From: Selaginella moellendorffii
Taxonomy: Eukaryota; Plantae; Lycopodiophyta
Assembly (NCBI RefSeq): GCF_000143415.4
Contig: NW_003314331.1
Coordinates: forward strand, 103,222 to 167,221
Direction: 5' to 3'
Length of the DNA: 64,000 nt
Position numbers and translations under genes: made by a program. This document shows positions 10,612 through 54,275 of the stretch, one piece after another. The stretch's first letter is position 1, and every line of letters starts with the position of its first letter. The notes under the pieces were generated by a model. The model saw only the letters and a program-made list of their open reading frames with translations, had not been told where the DNA came from and did no database searches.

Positions 10612-11775
10612 GGATGATCGATCAATCAGATATGCAAAAAGATGCAACTTTGGGAGGAGAAAAAGCCTTCATACCCTGAGGATAGCAACAACTTTTCTTC
10701 TAGATCAAAAGCAGCAAGGATTATCTGTTGATTGACAAGAGAGCATTCGGAGCTCTAGTTTAAAAGATTCCATGAGAGCAATGAAAAGAAGTGGCTATGG
10801 AGTGAAAGGAGTAGCCTTTGGTATACCTAGTATTTTCCAATATTGCTGCTTTACCAACCTGCTTTTGGGCATATGGCCCCAAACAGAATTGTCAAGGCTT
10901 GGCTTTGAAAGTTGAGCCATCTCATTTTTCAAAAAAAGAGAGTAAAAATGCTAGAATATACAAGAAAAACAGAGAAAAACAAAAAACATCCTTTTCTGAT
11001 GAACCATTTTCAAATCTTTAGGAGGCACTGGAAACTCATTCCACAGCAGCCATTCCTTGTTAAAGTGCAGAAGAACTTGCTCAGTTTTCGCCTTCATTTT
11101 CTGCACTCAATCCCTGCGTGCACTTTCGTTTTCACCTCCGAAACTGGTTGTTTCTCAGATTGACCGGTCAGAGCTTGTGTATCAAGTGTGAAATGGGATT
11201 TGTATTCTGGTCAAACTGGACAGTGTAGTGCAGGAAAAAACTATAGTATAGCAAAAGTATATAGCAGTAGTATGTGAGAAGCTATATACGCTGGAAGCGA
11301 CCGACCACGCGTGTTCCTGCTCCTGTAACTATGTCGCCCCCTCGCAAAACACGCACGCAGCATTTCCCCGGTTCTTCCACACACACATAGTCAGGGGTTG
11401 ACTAGAGGTAGTGCCCAAAGAGAAAAAAAGAGAGAAATAATGGTATGGTCGTGCACCGCGAAATAGTCCCAGGAAGACCTCGCGTTTTTCTTGGCGTGCT
11501 CGGTGCGACTTTGGGCGATGGCTGGCTGGCTGGTAGATTTGGAGGTTTTCTTTTTCGCTCTTCTTCCTTCCGTTTTTTGTTCATTGTCAAACCAACTTTA
11601 CACGGTCTTTCTTTTTATAAAGACGCGGTCGATGCAGCGTTTTCTTTCGTACCAAGTTTTTGGAGTTCTCTGTAGAGATCCCAGGGCGATCGCGGTTGTG
11701 GATCAGGAAGACTTGGATCTGGAGATATCACACAGAGTTCCTTGTAAAATTCTCCCGCGGTCGGCAGGAAAGGCG

Positions 11776-12114
11776 ATGAGGAGCACCAGAGTCCTGGCTT
11801 TGATCCTTGTGATGGGTTTGTACTGCTCGAGCTTCATCCAAGTGGCTGTTTCGGGAAGATTGGTTGTCGCAGAGAAGCAGCAGGAGAGCAACGATCATGG
11901 AAAGCACCGGGCTGGTGATCATCCAGCAGCAGCGGTGGAATGGATTCACAAATCTCCTAGCAGCAGCCATGTCTTGCATTCGTCCAATGGAAGAGTGTTT
12001 AGCCTCTCGCTCAACAGGATGCCAAAGAAGGTGACTCCACCGTCGGGGCCGTCCAAATGCCACAACGCGATTTCCACGGCTCGGGCTTCCACCATGGCAA
12101 ATTGCAGGAACTAA
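11776..12114 (+). CDS. Secreted small signalling peptide precursor 1 (IDA-like core, two-Cys tail)
   Basis: 112 aa; signal peptide MRSTRVLALILVMGLYCSSFIQVAVSGR; C-terminal MPKKVTPPSGPSKCHNAISTARASTMANCRN*. Confidence 0.85.
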   Translation: MRSTRVLALILVMGLYCSSFIQVAVSGRLVVAEKQQESNDHGKHRAGDHPAAAVEWIHKSPSSSHVLHSSNGRVFSLSLNRMPKKVTPPSGPSKCHNAISTARASTMANCRN

Positions 12115-12504
12115 CACCAGTGGATTCCACTCATTTTTCATTTCTTTTTCTTGGGTGGGGAGCTTAGATCAACGTTTTAAGATAGTCCATTCTTTTCGGC
12201 GATTTGGAGGCCAGTGTAGAGAAAAGGCTAGACACAGACACTCACACTTGTTTTCTTGTCTATAAGAAAGTTTTGTTCTCATGAAAACTTGTATAGAAAA
12301 CGATCCAAAGCGCTTTGGAGCCAACATGTTTTGACACAAGATTTGGAATCGACAAACCAGCGGCAATTTCTGCTTAGTTGTAACCCAACATCAAATCAAT
12401 CAAACATCACCAAGAAAAATCTAAACAAAAGAATGAGTGAGTGACCCTCTGATTTGTCAAAAAATGGCGGCTCTGAGAATATTGCGTCAATCATGAGACC
12501 GGAT

Positions 12505-12580
12505 TGTCAATGGTCAAAGACCACGTGTCACCGACGTGGCCGAGTAGAAACGCTAGAGAACTCGTAAAAGTCAACCAGCC
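12505..12580. promoter_or_regulatory. Cluster of W-boxes and G-box/ABRE motifs upstream of peptide gene 2
   Basis: GGTCAA 12512-12517, CACGTG 12522-12527, ACGTGGC 12534-12540, AGTCAA 12569-12574; motif presence only. Confidence 0.45.
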
Positions 12581-12881
12581 GAGAACGGAAGTGTGTGTCG
12601 ATGGATTTCGAAGATCTCCACGCGACTATCAAGATCAAGCGGCCTGATCTCCAGACAGTCGAGTTTTCGATTATCCACAAAGCACTGCGCGGAGATTCCA
12701 GCCCGTGGTTCGCATCTCTATATAACACATGGGCTGCCTGTTTCCTCCCAGCGAAGTTTCTGGCTGGCTAGCGAGATATTCACCGCCATCATCAGGTTTG
12801 GAAAGTTCGGGCCGCAGCTTGAATCGTATAAATCCATGCTTCCACCCCGTGCTTTTGATTTCCAAGCCGAGGATCATGTAC

Positions 12882-13145
12882 ATGGCTTGTAGAAGAGCTG
12901 CAGGTGTTTTCGTGATCCTGGCGGCGATGGTTTTCCTGGATTGTTGCGGGGCATCGAGGCTTTTGATCGCTGGTGCTGGTGTTGGAGAGTTGTCACAAGG
13001 ATCATCAAGAGTCTCAAGCCCATCTTTGCATCTGGAGCAACACACGCTCCCAAAGAGAATACCAGTTCCTCCATCGGGTCCTTCTAGATGCCACAACAGT
13101 CTCTCGGCGCGATTCAAAGTTAAGCGTCCAGGGCCATGCCAGTGA
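12882..13145 (+). CDS. Secreted small signalling peptide precursor 2 (IDA-like core, two-Cys tail)
   Basis: 87 aa; signal peptide MACRRAAGVFVILAAMVFLDCCGASR; C-terminal LPKRIPVPPSGPSRCHNSLSARFKVKRPGPCQ*; TATAAA about 50 nt upstream; alternative ATG at 12876. Confidence 0.87.
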   Translation: MACRRAAGVFVILAAMVFLDCCGASRLLIAGAGVGELSQGSSRVSSPSLHLEQHTLPKRIPVPPSGPSRCHNSLSARFKVKRPGPCQ

Positions 13146-15115
13146 CGATCTCCAGTCTCTCACAAACTCTCACAAAAGAAAGCCATTCTTTCCATATTTT
13201 TAAATGTTAATATCAATTATAATTGTACTAAAGCATATACTTATGAATTATAAACACAACAAAGCTATAGTTGTCCTTTTTACTGTGAGATATATTTGAT
13301 TAAGCCCATAGTGGCGTATTAACTGTAATATGCCTGGTAGATGAGCGACAAGGCCATCTTTTCTAGCATTGTTATGCTCGCAAACCCCTTGGTTGGATGT
13401 CTCCAAAGTTTATAATTGCGTCGGGATCGCGAAACTCTCGCCCGGATAGGATCCACCCCTTCGTGCTTTTGATCTTCTCTCGACAGCCCAATGAAGTCTC
13501 GCATCGAGCACAAGCGATGCATGATCCACCGCTGTTCTTCTTTCTTTCTAACGAGAAGATTTTGTCTCGTCTCGGGGCCTGGGACATGGACGCTGCGAGC
13601 CTGGTACCATAATGATTTTAAGAAGCACATTAGTCCAAGCAAAGCTTCCCGACCTGGTCGTGACTGGCAGCAGCAATCCAGTGTGCCTGCCATTTAAGTC
13701 TGCGGTGTATAGAATAAGTGTACGTGCTGGCTGGATCTGTCCCGGCGCTGCACTCCAGAGTGAGTCATCACAATGTATGTAATCTAGCATTTTTTTCCTA
13801 GAGATAAGAACTTACATCCACTTGGAAGAGCTTCGCACGCAAAGCATATAACGCGAGGAGACACTCCAATGCCATCTGTGACCGTGTTGGAGTTGAACAC
13901 TTCAAAAGGTTGTGTTGGAAAAACCATCGAAATGCTACAGCAACATGACGGAAGGCTGGCGTTAAAACACAAACGAAACGACCAACAGACCGGCAGTAAA
14001 GCAAGGCGAAAAACCATAGAAAAGAGAAAACGAAAAGGGAGGAGATCAAAAGTCTAAAAGCAAGTGAAAAAAAAAAGGAAAAAAGAAGAGGAAGCGGTAC
14101 CCGTTTGGACAATGCCGGCTCCCGTACCGCACCAGTCGGTGATGTCCCACGCGCAGCGATCGATCTCAACTAAAAACAGTGAATCAACTCATTACCAGGC
14201 AATACTAAGCAGCCTAGAAACGAAAGACTTACCAGTTTCCGTGATGTGATGGAACATAAAACACCGACTGTCGTCGTCCACTGTTGAATCCTAGCAGTCA
14301 TAAAAGAATAAGTAGCAAAAGTCGGCTCGGCTTGGCTCTAAGAAAATTAAATCTGAAAAAAAAAGAAAAGAAAAAAGAGATGAAGAACCAAGACGAGTGG
14401 AAGGGTCATATAACTCTGAACGAAGCTTCACAAAAATGCACTTTTTTGTGAGATTGAACGAAGCTCTACAGTAGGATCCCCTCGCTTTTGCTGGACGCAC
14501 AGATACTATCCCTTGTGAAGTGGGCCGGGGAGGAGCTCCTTTCTTACAAAATCCCGTGTCCGATGATCCTGTGTCCAAACTCTCCTCGTTAGACAAATAA
14601 GCTTTCGAGTAAAAGGATAACTCACCTACTTCTCGCACCATACTTTACACTCCGTTTTCCCTCTCTTTCGGCTGAACAGCTTAATTTGGTCGCGTCTGAG
14701 TCGAGCAAGCGAAAGGGAAACCTGTGAGGCCGCGACTTGTGTTGATAGAAATCCACACATCTCCCCCCATCTCCATCACAGCTTTCTTTTCTCTTTGCTT
14801 GTTGCTTTCCTTCGCTCACTCGCAATCCCACCTCATCTTCCAGCCAGCGAGAGAGAGCCTCTGTCTGTCTCGGAAGTACTCGCAGCTAGCTACGCTTTCC
14901 TTCTTTGATTGATTGAGAGCTCTTCTCCGCGAGTGCGTGCTTGTTCACCGAAGTAAAGGTTCCCTCTTCCGTCTTGTGCAGCTTCCAAGCTTTCATGCAA
15001 TTATTTGCCACCGGCGCCACCACTTCTCGCTAGTCCCTGCTTCATTCTTTCTCGTTGCGTGTCGAGGCTACTCTGAAGATATTCTTGCTGCCCGGCATAT
15101 GATCGTATCACCACC

Positions 15116-15454
15116 ATGGAAGCAGCTACCGACAGAAAGAAGATGACGATCGTCGTGTTGAATTTCATCCTGCTGGGACTTCTCGCCGAGAATGCTTTGT
15201 GTGCCAGGTATGGAGTAGCAGGAATTCCAGCGGCTTCTCCCTCTGCCTCTGCTCTTTCCCATGTTCCGTCTAAGGTCCAGTCTCAATTCTTCACAGTTCC
15301 CGCAAAGAAAGAGGCCGATCCAGCATTGCTTTCCGAGCAGAGAATGATCCACAATATGCTTCCCCGAGTTCTCACCACTCCACCTTCTGGTCCCAGCAGA
15401 GGAGGAAACGATATCGGTCTACAGTCCACCACGGCCCAGGATAGTGCACCTTAA
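15116..15454 (+). CDS. Secreted small signalling peptide precursor 3 (IDA/PIP-like SGPS motif, no Cys tail)
   Basis: Signal peptide MTIVVLNFILLGLLAENALCAR; motif MLPRVLTTPPSGPSRGGN. Confidence 0.8.
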   Translation: MEAATDRKKMTIVVLNFILLGLLAENALCARYGVAGIPAASPSASALSHVPSKVQSQFFTVPAKKEADPALLSEQRMIHNMLPRVLTTPPSGPSRGGNDIGLQSTTAQDSAP

Positions 15455-29341: not shown

Positions 29342-32227
29342 TGTGAGACACAAATCCCTAAGCCCCAAAATGGAGCTAAAAGAGTGCCATGTGGTAGTGG
29401 CCGAAGCGAAGGCCAAACGAGCATAACACGTTTGGACTAAAATCTCTGACTTGAAAGATTGAGAGCGGGAGTGGAACTCCCAATGAAGTGCTCGAGGAAC
29501 AAGCATGAAGCAAGCAATAAATGAGTCTTTAGAAAAGGGACACAAGAGGACCAAAACATGACATATGGAGAAGTCTGAGATGGACGATGGACCCGAGACA
29601 GAGTTCGAGATGGAGTCCGAGATGGACCGAGATGGAGTCTGAGATGGACCGAGATGGAGTCTGAGATGGACCCGAGACGGAGTCCGAGATGGACTGAGAT
29701 GGAGTCCGAGATGGACCAGAGATGGAGCTTGAGATGGAATCCAAGATGGAGTCCGAGAAGGACCTGAGATGGAGTCCGAAGTCGAGACCGAGACCGAGAC
29801 CGGGACCGAGGCCGAGACCGAGGCCGAGGCCGAGATTGAGCCCAAGCCCGAGTCCAAGTCCAAGTTTGAGTCCGAGTCCAAGTTCAAGTCTGAGAGGGTG
29901 AAAGCCCAAAGCGTTCGTCTTCCAAACCCTAGGGGGTTTGGTGAGCTCCAAAAGTATAGTAGGGGGGAGGACTCCAGTGGAGCTAGTTTGGCCAGGAAAG
30001 GCTAGTTTAGCCCAAGAAGGTTATATCCAGGTGTTGGGTGACGGGATAACCACTGGGAGGTCTAAGGCTAGAGTGAATATGGACTGTCAAGCAGGGTAAC
30101 TTAGTGAAGTGTTCAAGAGCTAGCTCTAGCTCCCCCGGGAGATCGAATGGTCAATGCTCCCAGTCTAAGTGTGGGTGGCACTACCTACTTGGATACCTGA
30201 TGTGGCTCAATGGAACCTCGCTCTAAGCCCATAGCTAGAGCACCTAAAGGCAGAAGGTGGGGAGAGTACCCACAGGGTTCGTGTAGGGCCACGGTGTTTC
30301 GAAATGTTGTCCCGAACTCCCAAATGGGGGAAAGGAGGAGGAGTAATCCTCTAATGTAGTGACTAAGGATACGGTCACATGGTGAGGAAGTCCCAGAGGA
30401 CAATGGGACTTAGTGGCTAGGCCTGCAAGCTTTGATTTAGTGGCAGTGTTAGCAAACATAGCCATGGACGGAAAAGGGACTTGGTAGGACTGACAAAGGG
30501 ATATTGGGGAAGGCTATTCCCCATGTCTGTGGGCATCCTAAGGATGCTAAGGAGTGGATCTGGGATGACCACTCGTGAACGGATGGCCTAGTCTTGGAGA
30601 GACGGGATTGTGATGCAAGTGGTATCGGACCACCAGTGCGGCAAAGGTGAATGGGCATGGCATTAGTGTAACAGGCTGATATGTCAGTGGTACCTTTGGG
30701 TGTCGGTCTTGGGACCGGACACGTGGAGCACTTGGACCAAGTGCAAGGGATGAGTGGCATGGATGCCATTCTCGGGGCTAGCAAGTCCCAAGTCCTAAAT
30801 TGGACTTAAGGAGGTTGTGAATGAGACTCCTCCAAGTAGTCGGAAGTGTGGTTAAATGACTAAAGTAGAATGGAAAATTTAGTCGCTTACAATTTGGTAT
30901 CGGAGCTGTTCCTTAGTCTGACTTTTATTGGTGCTCATGTATATCACCACTGGTGTTGGCATCGGAAGGTTCTAGGAGTGGGCCTATCTGTGAGGAGTAG
31001 CAGGTTGGGAAGACATGGCTATCCACTACAGTTCATGTGTGAACTTGTAGGTGAGGTGATGGATAGAAAAGGGCTAATAATGGAATGACTTCGGGATCTT
31101 GGGAACAATATATAGTTTTCCTCAAAGAGTTGAGGATGTGATCCAGATGAATGTTTGACTCAGCAAATAGGCTAATGTAGTTGTGGTAAACAACTATAGT
31201 TGGGATCATGGGAAAAATAAAGACTCCAAAACAATAAAGGAGTCACAAGATTATCCTCATATAGTTGAGGTTGGTGCTCATGAATTTGAGACCAAAACTA
31301 AGGATTGTGGAAGGTCAAATACGGAAGAGGACACAAGTCCTTGAAATGGTAGCTGAGGCTACCCTTGATAAATGCTAGAACAACGCAAGGAGTTGGGGGT
31401 GTACTTTGAGGATGAGTTGGTATTCTCATTACATGGACAAGTAGTCCTAAAGGGCAAAGGTTGTCCCCAAGGAACAACATCAAGTGTTTGAGTGACACTT
31501 GCAAAGATGGTCCTTGTGAGTAGGACATGAATATAAGAAGTTGTATTCCAATGAACTAGCACTTTAAATAAGACCTTATGGGTCATTGAATTTTAAAGTC
31601 CAAAAATGCTAAATGACTTAAGTAGAGTCAAGGAATGGCCCTAAGGGATTGCTAAAAACATTTGGACTGAGGTGTGTTGTGCCCCACAAAGGTTGGGGAG
31701 GATCATAGGATCCAAGTATGAGAACAGTGAGTATCTCATCGATGGCAGAATGTGCCATACTAAAGTTGTGGGGAAGGTGTTCCTAAAAGAAAACAACTTT
31801 GACATAAAGTTATGAGTAAACTCTATGGTGCAGTGCTAATGGATAGTTGGCATGAGAAAGAACTGTATTGGTCTTGGCAAGGACCTAAACACAAATGAGA
31901 AGTATCATAAAGGTAGGCTCGTGGAGCCGATGGTGTGGAGACACCAAATGTGCCAAGGCATAATGCCTTAAGGTGAGTTGGCGGGCTCACGAGAATGTGA
32001 GACACAAAATCCCTAGGCCCCAAAGTGGAGTCGGAAAGGGTGCCACGTGGTAGTGGCTGAAGCGAGAGCCAAACGAGCGTAACACGTTTGGACCAAAAGC
32101 TCCGACTTGAAAAGTCAAGAGCGGGAGTGGAACTCCCAACGAAGTGCTCGAGGAACGAGCACGAAGCGAGCAAAAGGCGAGGCTCCAAAAAGGGACCCAA
32201 AAGGACCAACACATGACACGTGGGAGT

Positions 32228-32757
32228 GTCCGAGATGGACTTGAGTTGGAGTCCGAAGTGGAGTCCGAGATGGACCCAAGTTGGAGTCCAAAGTGGAGTC
32301 CGAGATGGAGTCCGAAGTGGAGTCCGAGGTGGACCCGAGATGGACCCGAGTTGGAGTCCGAAGTGGAGTCCGAGATGGACCCGAGTTGGAGTCCGAAGTG
32401 GAGTTCGAGATGGACCCGAGATGGAGTCCGAGATGGAGTCCGAAGTGGAGTCTGAGGTGGACCCGAGATGGACCCGAGTTGGAGTCCGAAGTGGAGTCCG
32501 AGATGGACCCGAGATGGAGTCCAAGATGGAGTCCGAGATGGACCCGAGATGGAGTTCGAGATGGAGTCCGAGATGGAGTCCGAGATGGAGTCCGAAGTTG
32601 AGACCGAGACCGGGACCGAGACCGGGACCGAGACCGAGACCGAGATCGGGACCGAGACCGAGACCGAGGCCGAGGCCGAGACCGAGCCCAAGCCCGAGTC
32701 CGAGTCCGAATCCGAGTCCGAGTCCGAGTCCGAGTCCGAGTCCGAGTCCGAGTCCGG
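32228..32757. repeat. Compound minisatellite inside the LTR: 12-mer GAGATGGAGTCC variants, then 6-mers GAGACC and GAGTCC; copies at about 29575-29890 and 38103-38643
   Basis: Directly visible tandem arrays; they produce the low-complexity ORFs in all six frames. Confidence 0.95.
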
Positions 32758-36700: not shown

Positions 36701-39700
36701 AGGTGCCAAGGTGAGATCACTAGGTGATCTTATGGCCAGATAAGGACAAGGTCCTTGGTTGGCTAAGGAATGAAGTTCCTGGTTCAAAATGTTGAAATTG
36801 AACTGTTTAAGGTGGTGTGGCTTGGTCGTGATGACCAAGTGGGAAGAGCACCTAAGGGAAATAAACTATGTCCGTGAGATGGCATAGTGAGTCCGAGGAA
36901 AGTAGTCTCTATAAAAGACCTATGGGAGGGTCACGAAGTTGGGCCGTGGATAGAGCCCATAGCAGAAGATGCTAAAGAGACGTACTAGGGGTGAACATCC
37001 TCCGGACTTGGCAAAGGAGAGTCTTTGCTATGGAACCGAAACAATACCTCAAGGAGGGAGGTAGAGATTCGATGTTGCTTGGTGCAACAATCAACGAATA
37101 GGAGCAAAAGATGAGTGGCCAAGATAGGGCCGTGGAATCCCTTGGGGGGAATCCAAGTGACAAAGTTAGGCGAGGAACACTAATGTGTTGGACGCTAATA
37201 AGTTGCGGGAAAGGAAGTGTGTTTCCAAGGAGGGATTCCGAAATGCTCCGGTTTGGCGAAAGTGGAAGCTCCAAGGGAGGGAGCGGTAAGGTAGCCAAAT
37301 GATAGGGCAATGGACAACCCTAGCACAAAGTGTGATAAATGGAACTTAGTGCCCAAGGTGGCACGAAATAGAAGAGAGGATGATGGTGCCCTCAAGTAAT
37401 GAACTTCCTAGGATAGGGAAGTGGAGTTGCACAATCTGTGCAATGCAAGGTGTTGGAGACACCTAGGGAATTGACTTCCAAAAGTCAAAAGAGTAAAAGT
37501 TCCAAGGTGCAAACATTCAATAGATGGAAATTGAGACTACTCAAGAAGGAGTAGTGGGATTGACTTAGAGAAGGGTCTCTAAGAGGTTTAGTGAGAACTA
37601 AACCAATAAAAGGAGAGAACCACTACATGTGGTCCAATCAGTCTCTAAGTTGGAGAGGCTACCCTCCTTAGAGGAAAGGCAAGGCATGGTGAGCCTTGGG
37701 TGTCAAACCATTGAGGCATATGCAAAAGGCATGGTGAGCCTTCAATGTCAAACCATTGACAAATATTGGCTAGGTGCCAAGGATGGAAATGGTAACACAT
37801 GCGAGTGTTACTTTACAAAATGGTTTACCGTTCGATGAGGACATCGAACTTCGTCTATGGGTGGTGGAGTTGTGAGACACAAAATCCCTAGGCCCCAAAG
37901 TGGAGCCGGAAAGGGTGCCACGTGGTAGTGGCTGAAGCGAGAGCCAAACGAGCGTAACACGTTTGGACCAAAAGCTCCGACTTGAAAAGTCAAGAGCGGG
38001 AGTGGAACTCCCAACGAAGTGCTCGAGGAACGAGCACGAAGCGAGAAAAAGGCGAGGCTCCAAAAAGGGACCCAAAAGGACCAACACATGACACGTGGGA
38101 GTGTCCGAGATGGACTCGAGTTGGAGTCCGAAGTGGAGTCCGAGATGGACCCAAGTTGGAGTCCAAAGTGGAGTCCGAGATGGAGTCCGAAGTGGAGTCC
38201 GAGGTGGACCCGAGATGGACCCGAGTTGGAGTCCGAAGTGGAGTCCGAGATGGACCCGAGTTGGAGTCCGAAGTGGAGTTCGAGATGGACCCGAGATGGA
38301 GTCCGAGATGGAGTCCGAAGTGGAGTCCGAGGTGGACCCGAGATGGACCCGAGTTGGAGTCCGAAGTGGAGTCCGAGATGGACCCGAGATGGAGTCCGAG
38401 ATGGAGTCCGAGATGGAGTCCGAGATGGACCCGAGATGGAGTCCGAGATGGAGTCCGAGATGGAGTCCGAGATGGAGTCCGAGATGGAGTCCGAAGTCGA
38501 GACCGAGACCGGGACCGAGACCGGGACCGAGACCGAGACCGAGACCGAGATCGGGACCGAGACCGAGACCGAGGCCGAGGCCGAGACCGAGCCCAAGCCC
38601 GAGTCCGAGTCTGAATCCGAGTCCGAGTCCGAGTCCGAGTCCGGAGCCTGAGAGGGTGAAAGCCCAAAGCGTTCGTCTCCCAGACCCTGGGGGGTTTGGT
38701 GAGCTCCAAAAGTATAGTAGGGGGAGGACTGCAGTGGAGCCAGTTTGGCCAGGAAAGGCCAGTTTGGCCCAGGAAGGCCGGACCCAGTGTTGGGTGATGA
38801 GCTGCCCACTGGGAAGTCCAAGACTAGAGTGAACACGGACCGACAAGCGGGGTAGCTTGGTGAAGTGTTCAAGAGCCGGCTCTAGTTCCCCCGGGAGATC
38901 GACTGGCCGATGCTCCCAGTCCAAGTGTGGGTGGCACTACCTACTTGGATACCTGGTGTGGCTCAACGGAACCCGCTCTAAGCCCATGGCTAGAGCACCC
39001 AAGAGTAGAAGGCGAGGAGAGTACCCAGGTGGCTCGCGTAAGGCCACGGTGTTCCGAAATGTTGTCCCAAAGGCCTAGACTGTGGAAAGGAAGAGGAGCA
39101 GTCCTCTGGGGTAGTGACCAAGGACACAGTCACACAGTGAGGAAGTCCTAGAGGATAGTGGGACTTAGTGGTCGGGCCGGTGGGCCTCGATCCAGTGGCA
39201 GTGTTGGCGAACACAGCCAAGGACAGAAAGGGACTTGGTGGGGACCAGAACAGAGATATTGGGGAAGGCTATTCCCCATGTCTGTAGGCATCCTAAGGAT
39301 GTTAAGGAGTGGATCTGGGATGATCACGCATGGATGGATGACCCAGTCTTTGAGAGACGGGATTGGAATGTAGGTGGTGTTGGACCACCAGTGTGACCGA
39401 GGTAAATGGGCATGGCCTTAGCGTAACGGGCCGATATGTCGGTGGTACCTTGGGGTGTCGATCATGGGATCGGACACGTGGAGCACTTGGACCAAGTGCT
39501 AAGGTTGAGTGGCATGGATGCCATTCTCGGGGCTAGCAAGCCCCAAGTCCTGAGTTAGGCTTATGGAGGTTGTGAATAAGACTCCTCCAAGTGGTCGGAG
39601 GTGTGGTTAAGTGACTAAAGTAGAATGGAAAAATTAGTCGCTTACAGAGAACCCCTTCCCAAAGGCATCCTAATGGAAATGGGAATGGCATATCCTAAGT

Positions 39701-52517: not shown

Positions 52518-54275
52518 TTACCCATCCAAATTAGCAAACATTTTCTGCAGCCGATCCGTGCAGGAGGTCATTGTTGGTCTAGCCTTAGGCTGCTCCTCCA
52601 GGCAGTCATCTCGAAGTTCTTCCAGCTCTTGGGTCAGAGTCACCTTGGACGTATGGATTAGCCAGCCTAGACCCCACACGTCGACTGCAGTATCGTGAGG
52701 GCCCAGAGAAATCTCAGGTGCATGACAGGCACCGGAAAGCATTGCTGCAGCACACGGAGCTGGAGAAGTGCAGGACTCATCCCAGTCAAAGAGCACCCAC
52801 TGGTTGGAAGTGAGATCGAGTCCCACGTTCCTCCAGCTCACGTCCCTGTGTATCACACCCCTCTCATGGGCATAACACAGCGCACTGGAGACATGAAGCA
52901 AGGCCTTTAACAGCTCGGGAACGGGCCTGGCTTGCTGGTTCGTATCCAGCCGCGGCGTGAACGTCAAAGTGTACAACCGATCGTCCTCATCAGGATCATT
53001 CCGTTTCCTCTTGCGGGGACAGGTCCTTGTATGACACTTCTCTGCATTTGGGCAGCCCTGTATGCGTGAATACGTGTTCCACACCTTCTTTGCCTTCTCC
53101 AGGTCCATATACCCCTTGATGACCGAGTATCCCGAAAGAACCACGGACTTGCCACCCTTCTCAGAATCCACTTCCTGCACCGTGAACGTATCAGAAATCT
53201 CGTTCCTCTTCGAGCATAGATCACAAAGGCCCGCCAGAACCCTCCCCAAGTTGAAAAGTATCAGCTGGGACCGCACCCTGCCAGTCATGCTGCTCAGATC
53301 CACCGTGACCAAATCTTCGCACTGCACCTTGCCCCCACCATGGTAGAGTGCACCGAATGTCACGTTGGGACCCCTTGCATGGTAGCCAAGCAGATAAGGC
53401 ACGTCCTTGTACACCCAGACCAGCTTGTTCATGAGCTCCTTCTTTGGATTCCCTGGCCCCCGAACTACCTTTTCTTCACCCCGGAACAAAGAATAAAGAG
53501 CGCCCACATATCCAACGTAGTCAGGAAGTTGAGACAGTGTCTGCGTCTCGCAGTTTGTGTTCCTGTCGAAAGTGAATGGCACAGAAGTCTGAAGGTACCC
53601 CTTGATTGCTTCGTGTATAAGCGTGTTCCAAAACGGAATGTAAGAAAATTCTGTAATGCCTGTAAGAGTATAGAATGGCATCAGCAACCTGAGGTTGAAG
53701 AGAAAGAGGAAACGCACCAACTTCGGGAGGTTTGATGACGCTAAGAGCCAGAAGGCTTTCCAGGTCAACGCAATACGAATTTGGGGTGCCCTTGCTGAAC
53801 ATCCCAGCTACATCATGGGACTCTAGAGTCGCATACCTCGCGGGGCTCAGCGGAAAACATAATCCCGCCGGTTTCGATACCAGGAATTCCTTGAGCGATG
53901 CAAGATCAGGAACAGCCGGGGTTGCGTATTCGCTGAGTATGTGGCGTGTGGGATCATCAACGCCTGCCAGAAGACTCAGATCATGCAGCGGAGGAAAGAG
54001 GGCATACCTTCAGCCACTGTCACTCGAGCTTGGACGACGCGGCGGGAAAGAGCTTCGACTGTCAGAAGAGCGACATCGAGGGTAGCACCCACAGCTTTCT
54101 TGCTGATTCGAACAAGCGATTCCCTCGCCCACGGCAGGAGAGATTCAGCCTGGGTAGAGCTCAGAGATTCGACAGCAACTTGGAGTACCCTCTGAGCACC
54201 CAGGTACGAGCGAGGATCATCCAGAAACCCCTCGGCAGCGTCCACCACTCCCACGAGATCGTCAAGCGTACCCAT
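52518..54275 (-). CDS. Crinkler (CRN/CR)-like protein: helical N-terminal header, PD-(D/E)xK REase-like domain, CR-type Ser/Thr kinase; 3 exons, 551 aa
   Basis: Exons 54275-54008, 53963-53718 and 53659-52518 with GT-AG phase-1 introns of 44 and 58 nt join into one open frame. TEFSYIPFWNTLI...DRNT...LPDY...FRGEEK...PKKELMNKLVWVYKDVPYLLGYHARG; kinase VIK, IHRDVSWRNV, LFDWDES, HAPEI, VDVWGLG; basic patch PRKRKR. Confidence 0.8.

Follow-up and report, generated by a model that had tools for sequence, protein, structure and literature searches.

A cysteine-pair variant of IDA-like precursors in a tandem gene trio of Selaginella moellendorffii

How could a family of linear peptide ligands have given rise to a cyclic one, and did the ligand or the receptor change first? 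The question follows from structures of 2025–2026 in which the receptor HSL3/NUT reads a disulfide-locked ring peptide, the ligands of the related HAESA, HSL1 and HSL2 being linear IDA/IDL peptides. Bearing on it is a locus of the lycophyte Selaginella moellendorffii within a window of 64,000 nucleotides (assembly GCF_000143415.4, contig NW_003314331.1, positions 103,222 to 167,221, forward strand). Here two tandem open reading frames, ORF1 and ORF2, encode small predicted prepropeptides with cysteine in place of the arginine that precedes His-Asn in IDA, and with a second cysteine at the end of the tail. Comparison with known families shows ORF1 and ORF2 to be IDA/IDL-family precursors. The explanation that best accounts for the whole, held with slightly less than even confidence, is that they are functional and belong to a tandem family of three genes for secreted peptide precursors of the IDA/IDL type, and that their cysteine pair would form a ring and would be derived within the lycophytes. 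The relevant features are as follows.

11776..12114, + strand: ORF1, IDA-like prepropeptide gene, 112 amino acids plus stop; annotated as SELMODRAFT_424795 with a longer 5' model
11776..11856, + strand: predicted signal peptide of ORF1, about residues 1–27, cleavage near AVS/G or VSG/R (heuristic)
12025..12066, + strand: IDA-type core of ORF1, KKVTPPSGPSKCHN, residues 84–97; codon of Cys95 at 12058–12060
12067..12111, + strand: tail of ORF1, AISTARASTMANCRN, residues 98–112; codon of Cys110 at 12103–12105
12876..13145, + strand: ORF2, IDA-like prepropeptide gene, 89 amino acids plus stop; unannotated
13053..13097, + strand: IDA-type core of ORF2, KRIPVPPSGPSRCHN, residues 60–74; codon of Cys72 at 13089–13091
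13098..13142, + strand: tail of ORF2, SLSARFKVKRPGPCQ, residues 75–89; codon of Cys88 at 13137–13139

Both reading frames are intact and have the signal peptide-like N-terminus and IDA-type core attributed to them in a preliminary description of this DNA. The cores, PKKVTPPSGPSKCHN in ORF1 and PKRIPVPPSGPSRCHN in ORF2, are each followed by a 15-residue tail, and the C-terminal ends read ...NRMPKKVTPPSGPSKCHNAISTARASTMANCRN and ...TLPKRIPVPPSGPSRCHNSLSARFKVKRPGPCQ up to the stop. The second cysteine lies two residues before the stop in ORF1 and one in ORF2; the spacings, C-x14-C for Cys95/Cys110 and C-x15-C for Cys72/Cys88, are those first noticed. At each N-terminus there is a basic n-region together with a hydrophobic core of 12 residues (mean Kyte-Doolittle 2.7–2.9; in ORF1 VLALILVMGLYC, 2.72), and AXA-type sites lie at about residues 25–27. 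After predicted signal-peptide cleavage, exactly two cysteines are left in the propeptide of ORF1 and in that of ORF2. The layout of a small secreted precursor, with signal peptide, variable region and C-terminal peptide motif, is found in these two frames and in a third, ORF3, described below; for all three the signal-peptide assignment is a heuristic check of hydrophobicity and AXA sites, not a SignalP prediction.

Assignment to the IDA/IDL family is based on several lines of evidence. The core pattern P-[IVT]-P-P-S-[GA]-P-S-x-x-H-N, with its central proline and terminal His-Asn, is present in ORF1 (VTPPSGPSKCHN) and in ORF2 (PVPPSGPSRCHN). A profile of the three frames, run against 1.84 billion representative sequences, gave 23 matches at E <= 1e-3, among them named IDA-LIKE 2/3/4 proteins (E 2.6e-5 to 1e-3); those named IDA-LIKE or IDA-LIKE 2/3/4 come from Brassica, Citrus, Quillaja, Arachis and Apostasia. 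Apart from two self models, the small single-module matches are angiosperm IDLs, and most of the others are multi-module proteins of angiosperms, made up of MLPKxxPxPPSGPSxG repeats. Single-comparison BLASTP alignments to named or IDL-type relatives reach 5e-09 and 1e-09, and ORF2 aligns with a Morus IDL as LPKRIPVPPSGPSRCHN against LPKRIPIPYSGPSRKHN. The ESM Atlas clusters nearest to ORF2 carry Pfam IDL5 (PF27884); the C-terminal part of ORF1 alone yielded a weak lead only. A Pfam search with a library copy that lacks the IDL5 model PF27884 gave no match for these frames, nor for bona fide angiosperm IDLs.

In layout, with signal peptide, variable region, C-terminal motif and short tail, ORF1 and ORF2 resemble the IDA/IDL precursors, whose products are ligands of HAESA/HSL2 and HSL1, and the core [LM]P[KR]xxPxPPSGPSxxHN is common to both. 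They differ in having cysteine for the Arg/Lys before His-Asn, in the second cysteine one or two residues from the end, and in tails unlike the conserved DIGLQS or SxVNS tails. The residue aligned with Arg67 of IDA is indeed cysteine in both frames, so that the basic Lys-Arg pair before His-Asn, a SERK contact, is missing. That pair is not universal in the family: MpIDA1 has Pro-Ile and ends ...PSPIHN (PMC8462819).

An IDA-type gene in a lycophyte is not in itself new. An earlier study reported no IDA-like gene in S. moellendorffii (PMC4526919); subsequently Furumizu et al. (2021, PMC8462819) reported SmIDA1-3 as putative orthologs in this species and modelled them on SmHSL2 as linear 12-mers, so the initial view that IDA signalling would be unexpected in a non-seed plant is outdated. 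SmIDA1-3 belong to the same species and family as ORF1 and ORF2. Their sequences are given in figures only (PMC8462819), and ORF1 or ORF2 may be among them; the text of that paper says nothing on cysteines, tails or tandem arrangement. No description of the ORF1 or ORF2 peptide strings, of their locus tags or of a disulfide-bonded Selaginella IDA was found in the literature, the supplements of PMC8462819 and PMC13261660 lying outside the search.

A third member of the group was found by a six-frame motif scan, on the same strand 2 kb downstream and with the PPSGPS core of ORF1 and ORF2.

15116..15454, + strand: ORF3, third tandem paralog, 112 amino acids, unannotated; core RVLTTPPSGPSRGGN, cysteine-free tail DIGLQSTTAQDSAP of the angiosperm IDL type

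The trio spans 3.7 kb and is flanked by a U-box/ARM gene on one side and an LSM14-type gene on the other. In ORF3 the core is MLPRVLTTPPSGPSRGGN, with Gly-Gly-Asn (GGN) where ORF1 and ORF2 have xHN, and there is no cysteine after the signal peptide. Its tail, NDIGLQS...SAP, matches angiosperm IDA-LIKE tails and is conserved with the eudicot IDL2/3/4 tails; in a BLASTP alignment with a Brassica napus IDA-LIKE 3-like protein 18 of 31 residues are identical (58%), the whole tail to its last residue included. The tail that follows His-Asn in IDL precursors is usually regarded as discarded, and its conservation from lycophytes to eudicots suggests a function of its own. The genes with the cysteine pair thus stand beside a cysteine-free paralog that has the conserved IDL tail, a natural three-state comparison.

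There is also a likeness to the PIP/PIPL and multi-module IDL-like precursors, whose SGPS core runs into Gly-rich ends: the core of ORF3, ...PPSGPSRGGN, is similar to the PPSGPS(K/R)G modules seen in the multi-repeat matches from angiosperms. Unlike these, ORF3 has one module and an IDL-type tail, and ORF1 and ORF2 carry His-Asn and no Gly-rich end. Six of the multi-repeat matches contain two to five tandem MLPKxxPxPPSGPS(K/R)G modules. They resemble multi-copy precursors of IDA/PIP-like peptides, though their labels say no more than hypothetical, "proline-rich proteoglycan" or "extensin domain".

The assembly's second haplotype (GL377595.1, locus L001), 98.7% identical over the region, carries all three frames intact. 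There ORF2 is amino-acid identical with one synonymous difference, ORF3 is amino-acid identical, and in ORF1 four residues are replaced; these all belong to the signal or variable region, so that core and tail are unchanged. Per base, haplotype differences are half as frequent in the reading frames as in the flanks. Between ORF1 and ORF2, in the 13-codon block PPSGPSxxxNxxx, the proportion of nonsynonymous differences (pN) is 0.15, and synonymous differences between the paralogs are saturated (pS 0.67–0.77). Since synonymous sites are saturated while the core peptide is conserved, the duplications are ancient, and it is purifying selection on the core, not recent copying, that has preserved the peptide in the trio. 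The haplotype, profile and codon evidence together rule out chance reading frames.

Public annotation includes ORF1 but misses the other two genes. The NCBI hypothetical protein SELMODRAFT_424795 (scaffold GL377635.1) has ORF1 as its last 112 residues, at 100% identity. Exact-protein look-ups with ORF1 (also from a longer start), ORF2 (from either of two starts) and ORF3 gave no match, the only matches in word-indexed protein searches were the two NCBI models of ORF1, and for ORF2 and ORF3 there was no identical or similar called protein in the collections searched (15 billion sequences). In metagenome DNA, a degenerate search for PPSGPS[KR]CHN gave one chance match, antisense to a bacterial regulator frame. 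The two models of the ORF1 gene disagree, and neither fits the simple 112-residue frame. In SELMODRAFT_424795, from this haplotype, a spliced 5' extension is added; in SELMODRAFT_416410, from the other (L001, 6001–6602), a GT..AG interval equivalent to 12033–12287 is removed instead, which takes out the IDA motif and leaves an unrelated end, although the underlying DNA keeps the unspliced ORF1. With two conflicting models for a single gene, at least one of them must depart from the real transcript. Evidence for transcription comes from the presence of 31-nucleotide words (31-mers) in sequencing runs. In 11 RNA-like runs (small contig sets) from five studies, 7–51% of the sampled 31-mers of 11700–13250 are present, and those of the intergenic stretch 12400–12700 are absent, being found in DNA-like runs only. 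Such a genic but not intergenic pattern is as expected of transcripts; it is indirect, and does not tell ORF1 from ORF2 or show transcript ends.

The preliminary description saw in these precursors hybrids of IDA and CTNIP/SCREW. IDA/IDL and CTNIP/SCREW peptides have in common a PVPxSGPN/S core and the receptor pocket in which they bind, and differ at the C-terminal end (PMC13261660, PMC13585564). CTNIP4(46-70) is QRGPVRGSGRNGCTNIPRGSGRCHN, and HSL3 binding requires its Cys58-Cys68 disulfide (PMC13585564). The CTNIP sequences in print take the form ...GPVPPSGPSGC-TYIP...C or ...SGSGPNGC-TNIP...C-HG/HN, in which one or two residues separate the second cysteine from the C-terminus; CTNIP1-3 end in C-HG, C-RP and C-HG, and the Medicago and Aquilegia peptides are GPVAPSGPSGCTFIP...C and GPVPPSGPSGCTYIP...C (PMC13585564, PMC9191895).

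With these ligands of HSL3/NUT, ORF1 and ORF2 have much in common. The N-terminal PVPxSGP(N/S) core is present, and the proline-rich PVPPSGPSxC is identical up to the first cysteine. The first cysteine is followed in both groups by x-Asn or x-x, there are two cysteines only, the second almost at the C-terminus, and the predicted mature size is similar (~25–29 residues). By BLASTP, ORF2 and the Aquilegia CTNIP are identical at 10 of 13 positions aligned through the first cysteine; an ordinary angiosperm IDL aligns through SGPS only. The core of ORF1 likewise aligns with that of CTNIP through the cysteine, and with the cores of angiosperm IDLs. This much of the hybrid stands: the core through the first cysteine and the near-terminal second cysteine. 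The remainder does not. The C-T-x-I-P motif is missing, ORF1 having C-H-N-A-I and ORF2 C-H-N-S-L where CTNIPs have CTNIP, CSHIP, CTHIP, CTFIP or CTYIP, so that Ile61, which is important for HSL3 binding (PMC13585564), and the highly conserved Pro62 are without counterpart; the His-Asn of IDA is kept instead. The HSL3/NUT receptor clade, moreover, is reported absent from lycophytes. Membership of the CTNIP family is ruled out by motif, loop length and loop sequence; ORF1 and ORF2 are IDA-family members with a CTNIP-like topology and not CTNIPs.

What might the cysteine pair do? In the oxidising secretory pathway the two residues would form an intramolecular disulfide, closing a ring of 16 or 17 residues (both cysteines counted) and tying the tail to the position of Arg67 of IDA. 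A subtilase-type cut behind the conserved [ML]-P-[KR] would release a peptide of about 28–29 residues, a linear proline-rich IDA core with a C-terminal loop, whose overall topology and size would be those of CTNIP/SCREW peptides. Such a peptide would be a poor fit for a HAESA-type receptor. HAESA holds the free carboxylate of the terminal asparagine through Arg407 and Arg409 and does not bind IDA extended by SFVN; Lys66 and Arg67 of IDA, which contact SERK1, contribute about tenfold to affinity (PMC4848090). A cysteine bonded to the tail cysteine would keep the tail tethered even after cleavage behind the asparagine, and the pocket would be blocked. Because HAESA needs the free carboxylate, the looped form would require a more open C-terminal pocket in one of the three HSL-clade leucine-rich repeat (LRR) receptor kinases of Selaginella, and a SERK co-receptor.

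That the pair forms a ring, and that the ligand is read in CTNIP-like fashion by a receptor with an open pocket, is the reading we prefer without being able to call it probable. Favouring a real pair are its joint presence or absence across the three paralogs, the count of exactly two cysteines per mature region, and the location of the second at the extreme C-terminus despite dissimilar tails (n = 2 paralogs). Several considerations weigh on the other side. The disulfide, the cleavage sites and any proline hydroxylation are predictions. The pair is found in two paralogs of one species only, and the selection argument first drawn from its retention would rest on those two. The loops have no similarity to CTNIP loops, BLASTP alignments ending at the first cysteine, and at 14 (ORF1) and 15 (ORF2) residues they are 5–6 longer than the 9–10 of CTNIPs. 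The transcript evidence is indirect, the SmIDA peptides were modelled on SmHSL2 as linear 12-mers without difficulty (PMC8462819), and, as IDA/IDL precursors normally carry tails that are removed after His-Asn, the tail cysteine could be irrelevant to the mature peptide.

This last point leads to an explanation that is doubtful but deserves serious consideration, in which ORF1 and ORF2 encode ordinary linear IDA-like ligands. As with Arabidopsis IDA, the precursor would be cut before the proline-rich core and after His-Asn, the tail and its cysteine would be discarded, and a 12–14-mer ending ...PPSGPS(K/R)CHN would occupy an HAE/HSL2-type RxR pocket through its free asparagine carboxylate, with the core cysteine tolerated at a variable position. 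Angiosperm IDA/IDL precursors all have such tails and HAESA requires their removal (PMC4848090); outside the seed plants there is no conservation of the position that precedes His-Asn, as MpIDA1 illustrates (PMC8462819); and the SmIDA peptides were modelled as linear ligands of SmHSL2. However, a lone reactive cysteine would be unusual in a secreted 12-mer, both paralogs keep the second cysteine one or two residues from the C-terminus despite very different tails while the cysteine-free paralog has neither, and, if the disulfide forms in the endoplasmic reticulum, cleavage behind the asparagine would leave the tail tethered. It is very unlikely that the genes are not functional as read, being silent or decaying duplicates, or that the ORF1 mRNA loses its peptide-coding part by splicing as in SELMODRAFT_416410. 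That model with its unrelated end, the lack of annotation or of any matching called protein for ORF2 and ORF3 among 15 billion sequences, and the fact that no run recorded as RNA was shown to contain the frames speak for such a view; the intact frames on both haplotypes, the coding divergence half that of the flanks, the core conserved across saturated synonymous sites, the motif matches to angiosperm IDLs, the genic but not intergenic words of the RNA-like runs and the disagreement of the two gene models speak against it.

A different alternative, also suggested by the preliminary description, accepts the cysteine pair but makes it old. ORF1, ORF2 and the seed-plant CTNIP/SCREW peptides would all descend from one cysteine-bearing ancestor, cyclised IDA-type ligands being already present in the ancestor of vascular plants. 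In both groups Ser-Gly and the first cysteine are equally far apart and x-Asn comes next (SGPSK-C-H-N against SGRNG-C-T-N), the second cysteine is near the C-terminus in both groups, with the C-R-N end of ORF1 resembling the C-H-N end of CTNIP4, and the PVPPSGPSxC core is identical in the Aquilegia and Medicago CTNIPs. Yet the likeness ends at the first cysteine, beyond which there is no CTxIP motif and the loop differs in length. CTNIPs have been found in angiosperms only, Amborella included (PMC9191895), and for the NUT/HSL3 clade an origin in gymnosperms is reported (PMC13261660). Among the profile matches, which did not reach fern, gymnosperm or other lycophyte sequences, there is no link through ferns or gymnosperms. 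Finally, ORF1 and ORF2 each have both cysteines of the pair, and ORF3 and nine of nine aligned named or IDL-type angiosperm relatives have neither; the tail of ORF3 shows the cysteine-free IDL tail as a deeply conserved state. Descent from a common cysteine-bearing ancestor is therefore very unlikely.

In our preferred reading, by contrast, the pair is a later acquisition. Since ORF3 shares its cysteine-free tail with eudicot IDLs, that tail is taken as the old state and the tails of ORF1 and ORF2 as the changed ones; the cysteine-free state looks ancestral and the pair derived. The split between HAE/HSL2 and HSL3, at about 363 million years, is later than the lycophyte split. That age is given in PMC10588794, and Selaginella has three undifferentiated HSL-clade receptors (PMC8462819). 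With an HSL3/NUT clade reported only from gymnosperms onward, the pair is best read as a lineage-specific derivative of an ordinary IDL ancestor and not as an ancestral intermediate; it was probably gained convergently rather than being ancestral to CTNIP. A larger claim is to be worded with more caution still. It is possible that ORF1 and ORF2 specify a disulfide-cyclised IDA-type hormone of lycophytes, in which the change of arginine to cysteine before His-Asn and the cysteine at the end of the tail together make a ring-tailed, CTNIP-like ligand, perceived by a receptor of the HSL clade older than the split of HAE from HSL3. The locus would then illustrate in a living plant, as an independent or an ancestral case, how CTNIP/SCREW peptides came from IDA-like precursors, in a system of only three peptides and three HSL-clade receptors.

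Elsewhere in the window a 12-bp minisatellite, GTCCGAGATGGA, forms three arrays of up to 33 copies (29572–29793, 32228–32609 and 38103–38508). GC skew is strong in this region, and the arrays at 32 and 38 kb seem to belong to a repeated unit. An open reading frame of 416 amino acids lies on the minus strand within 52518–54275.

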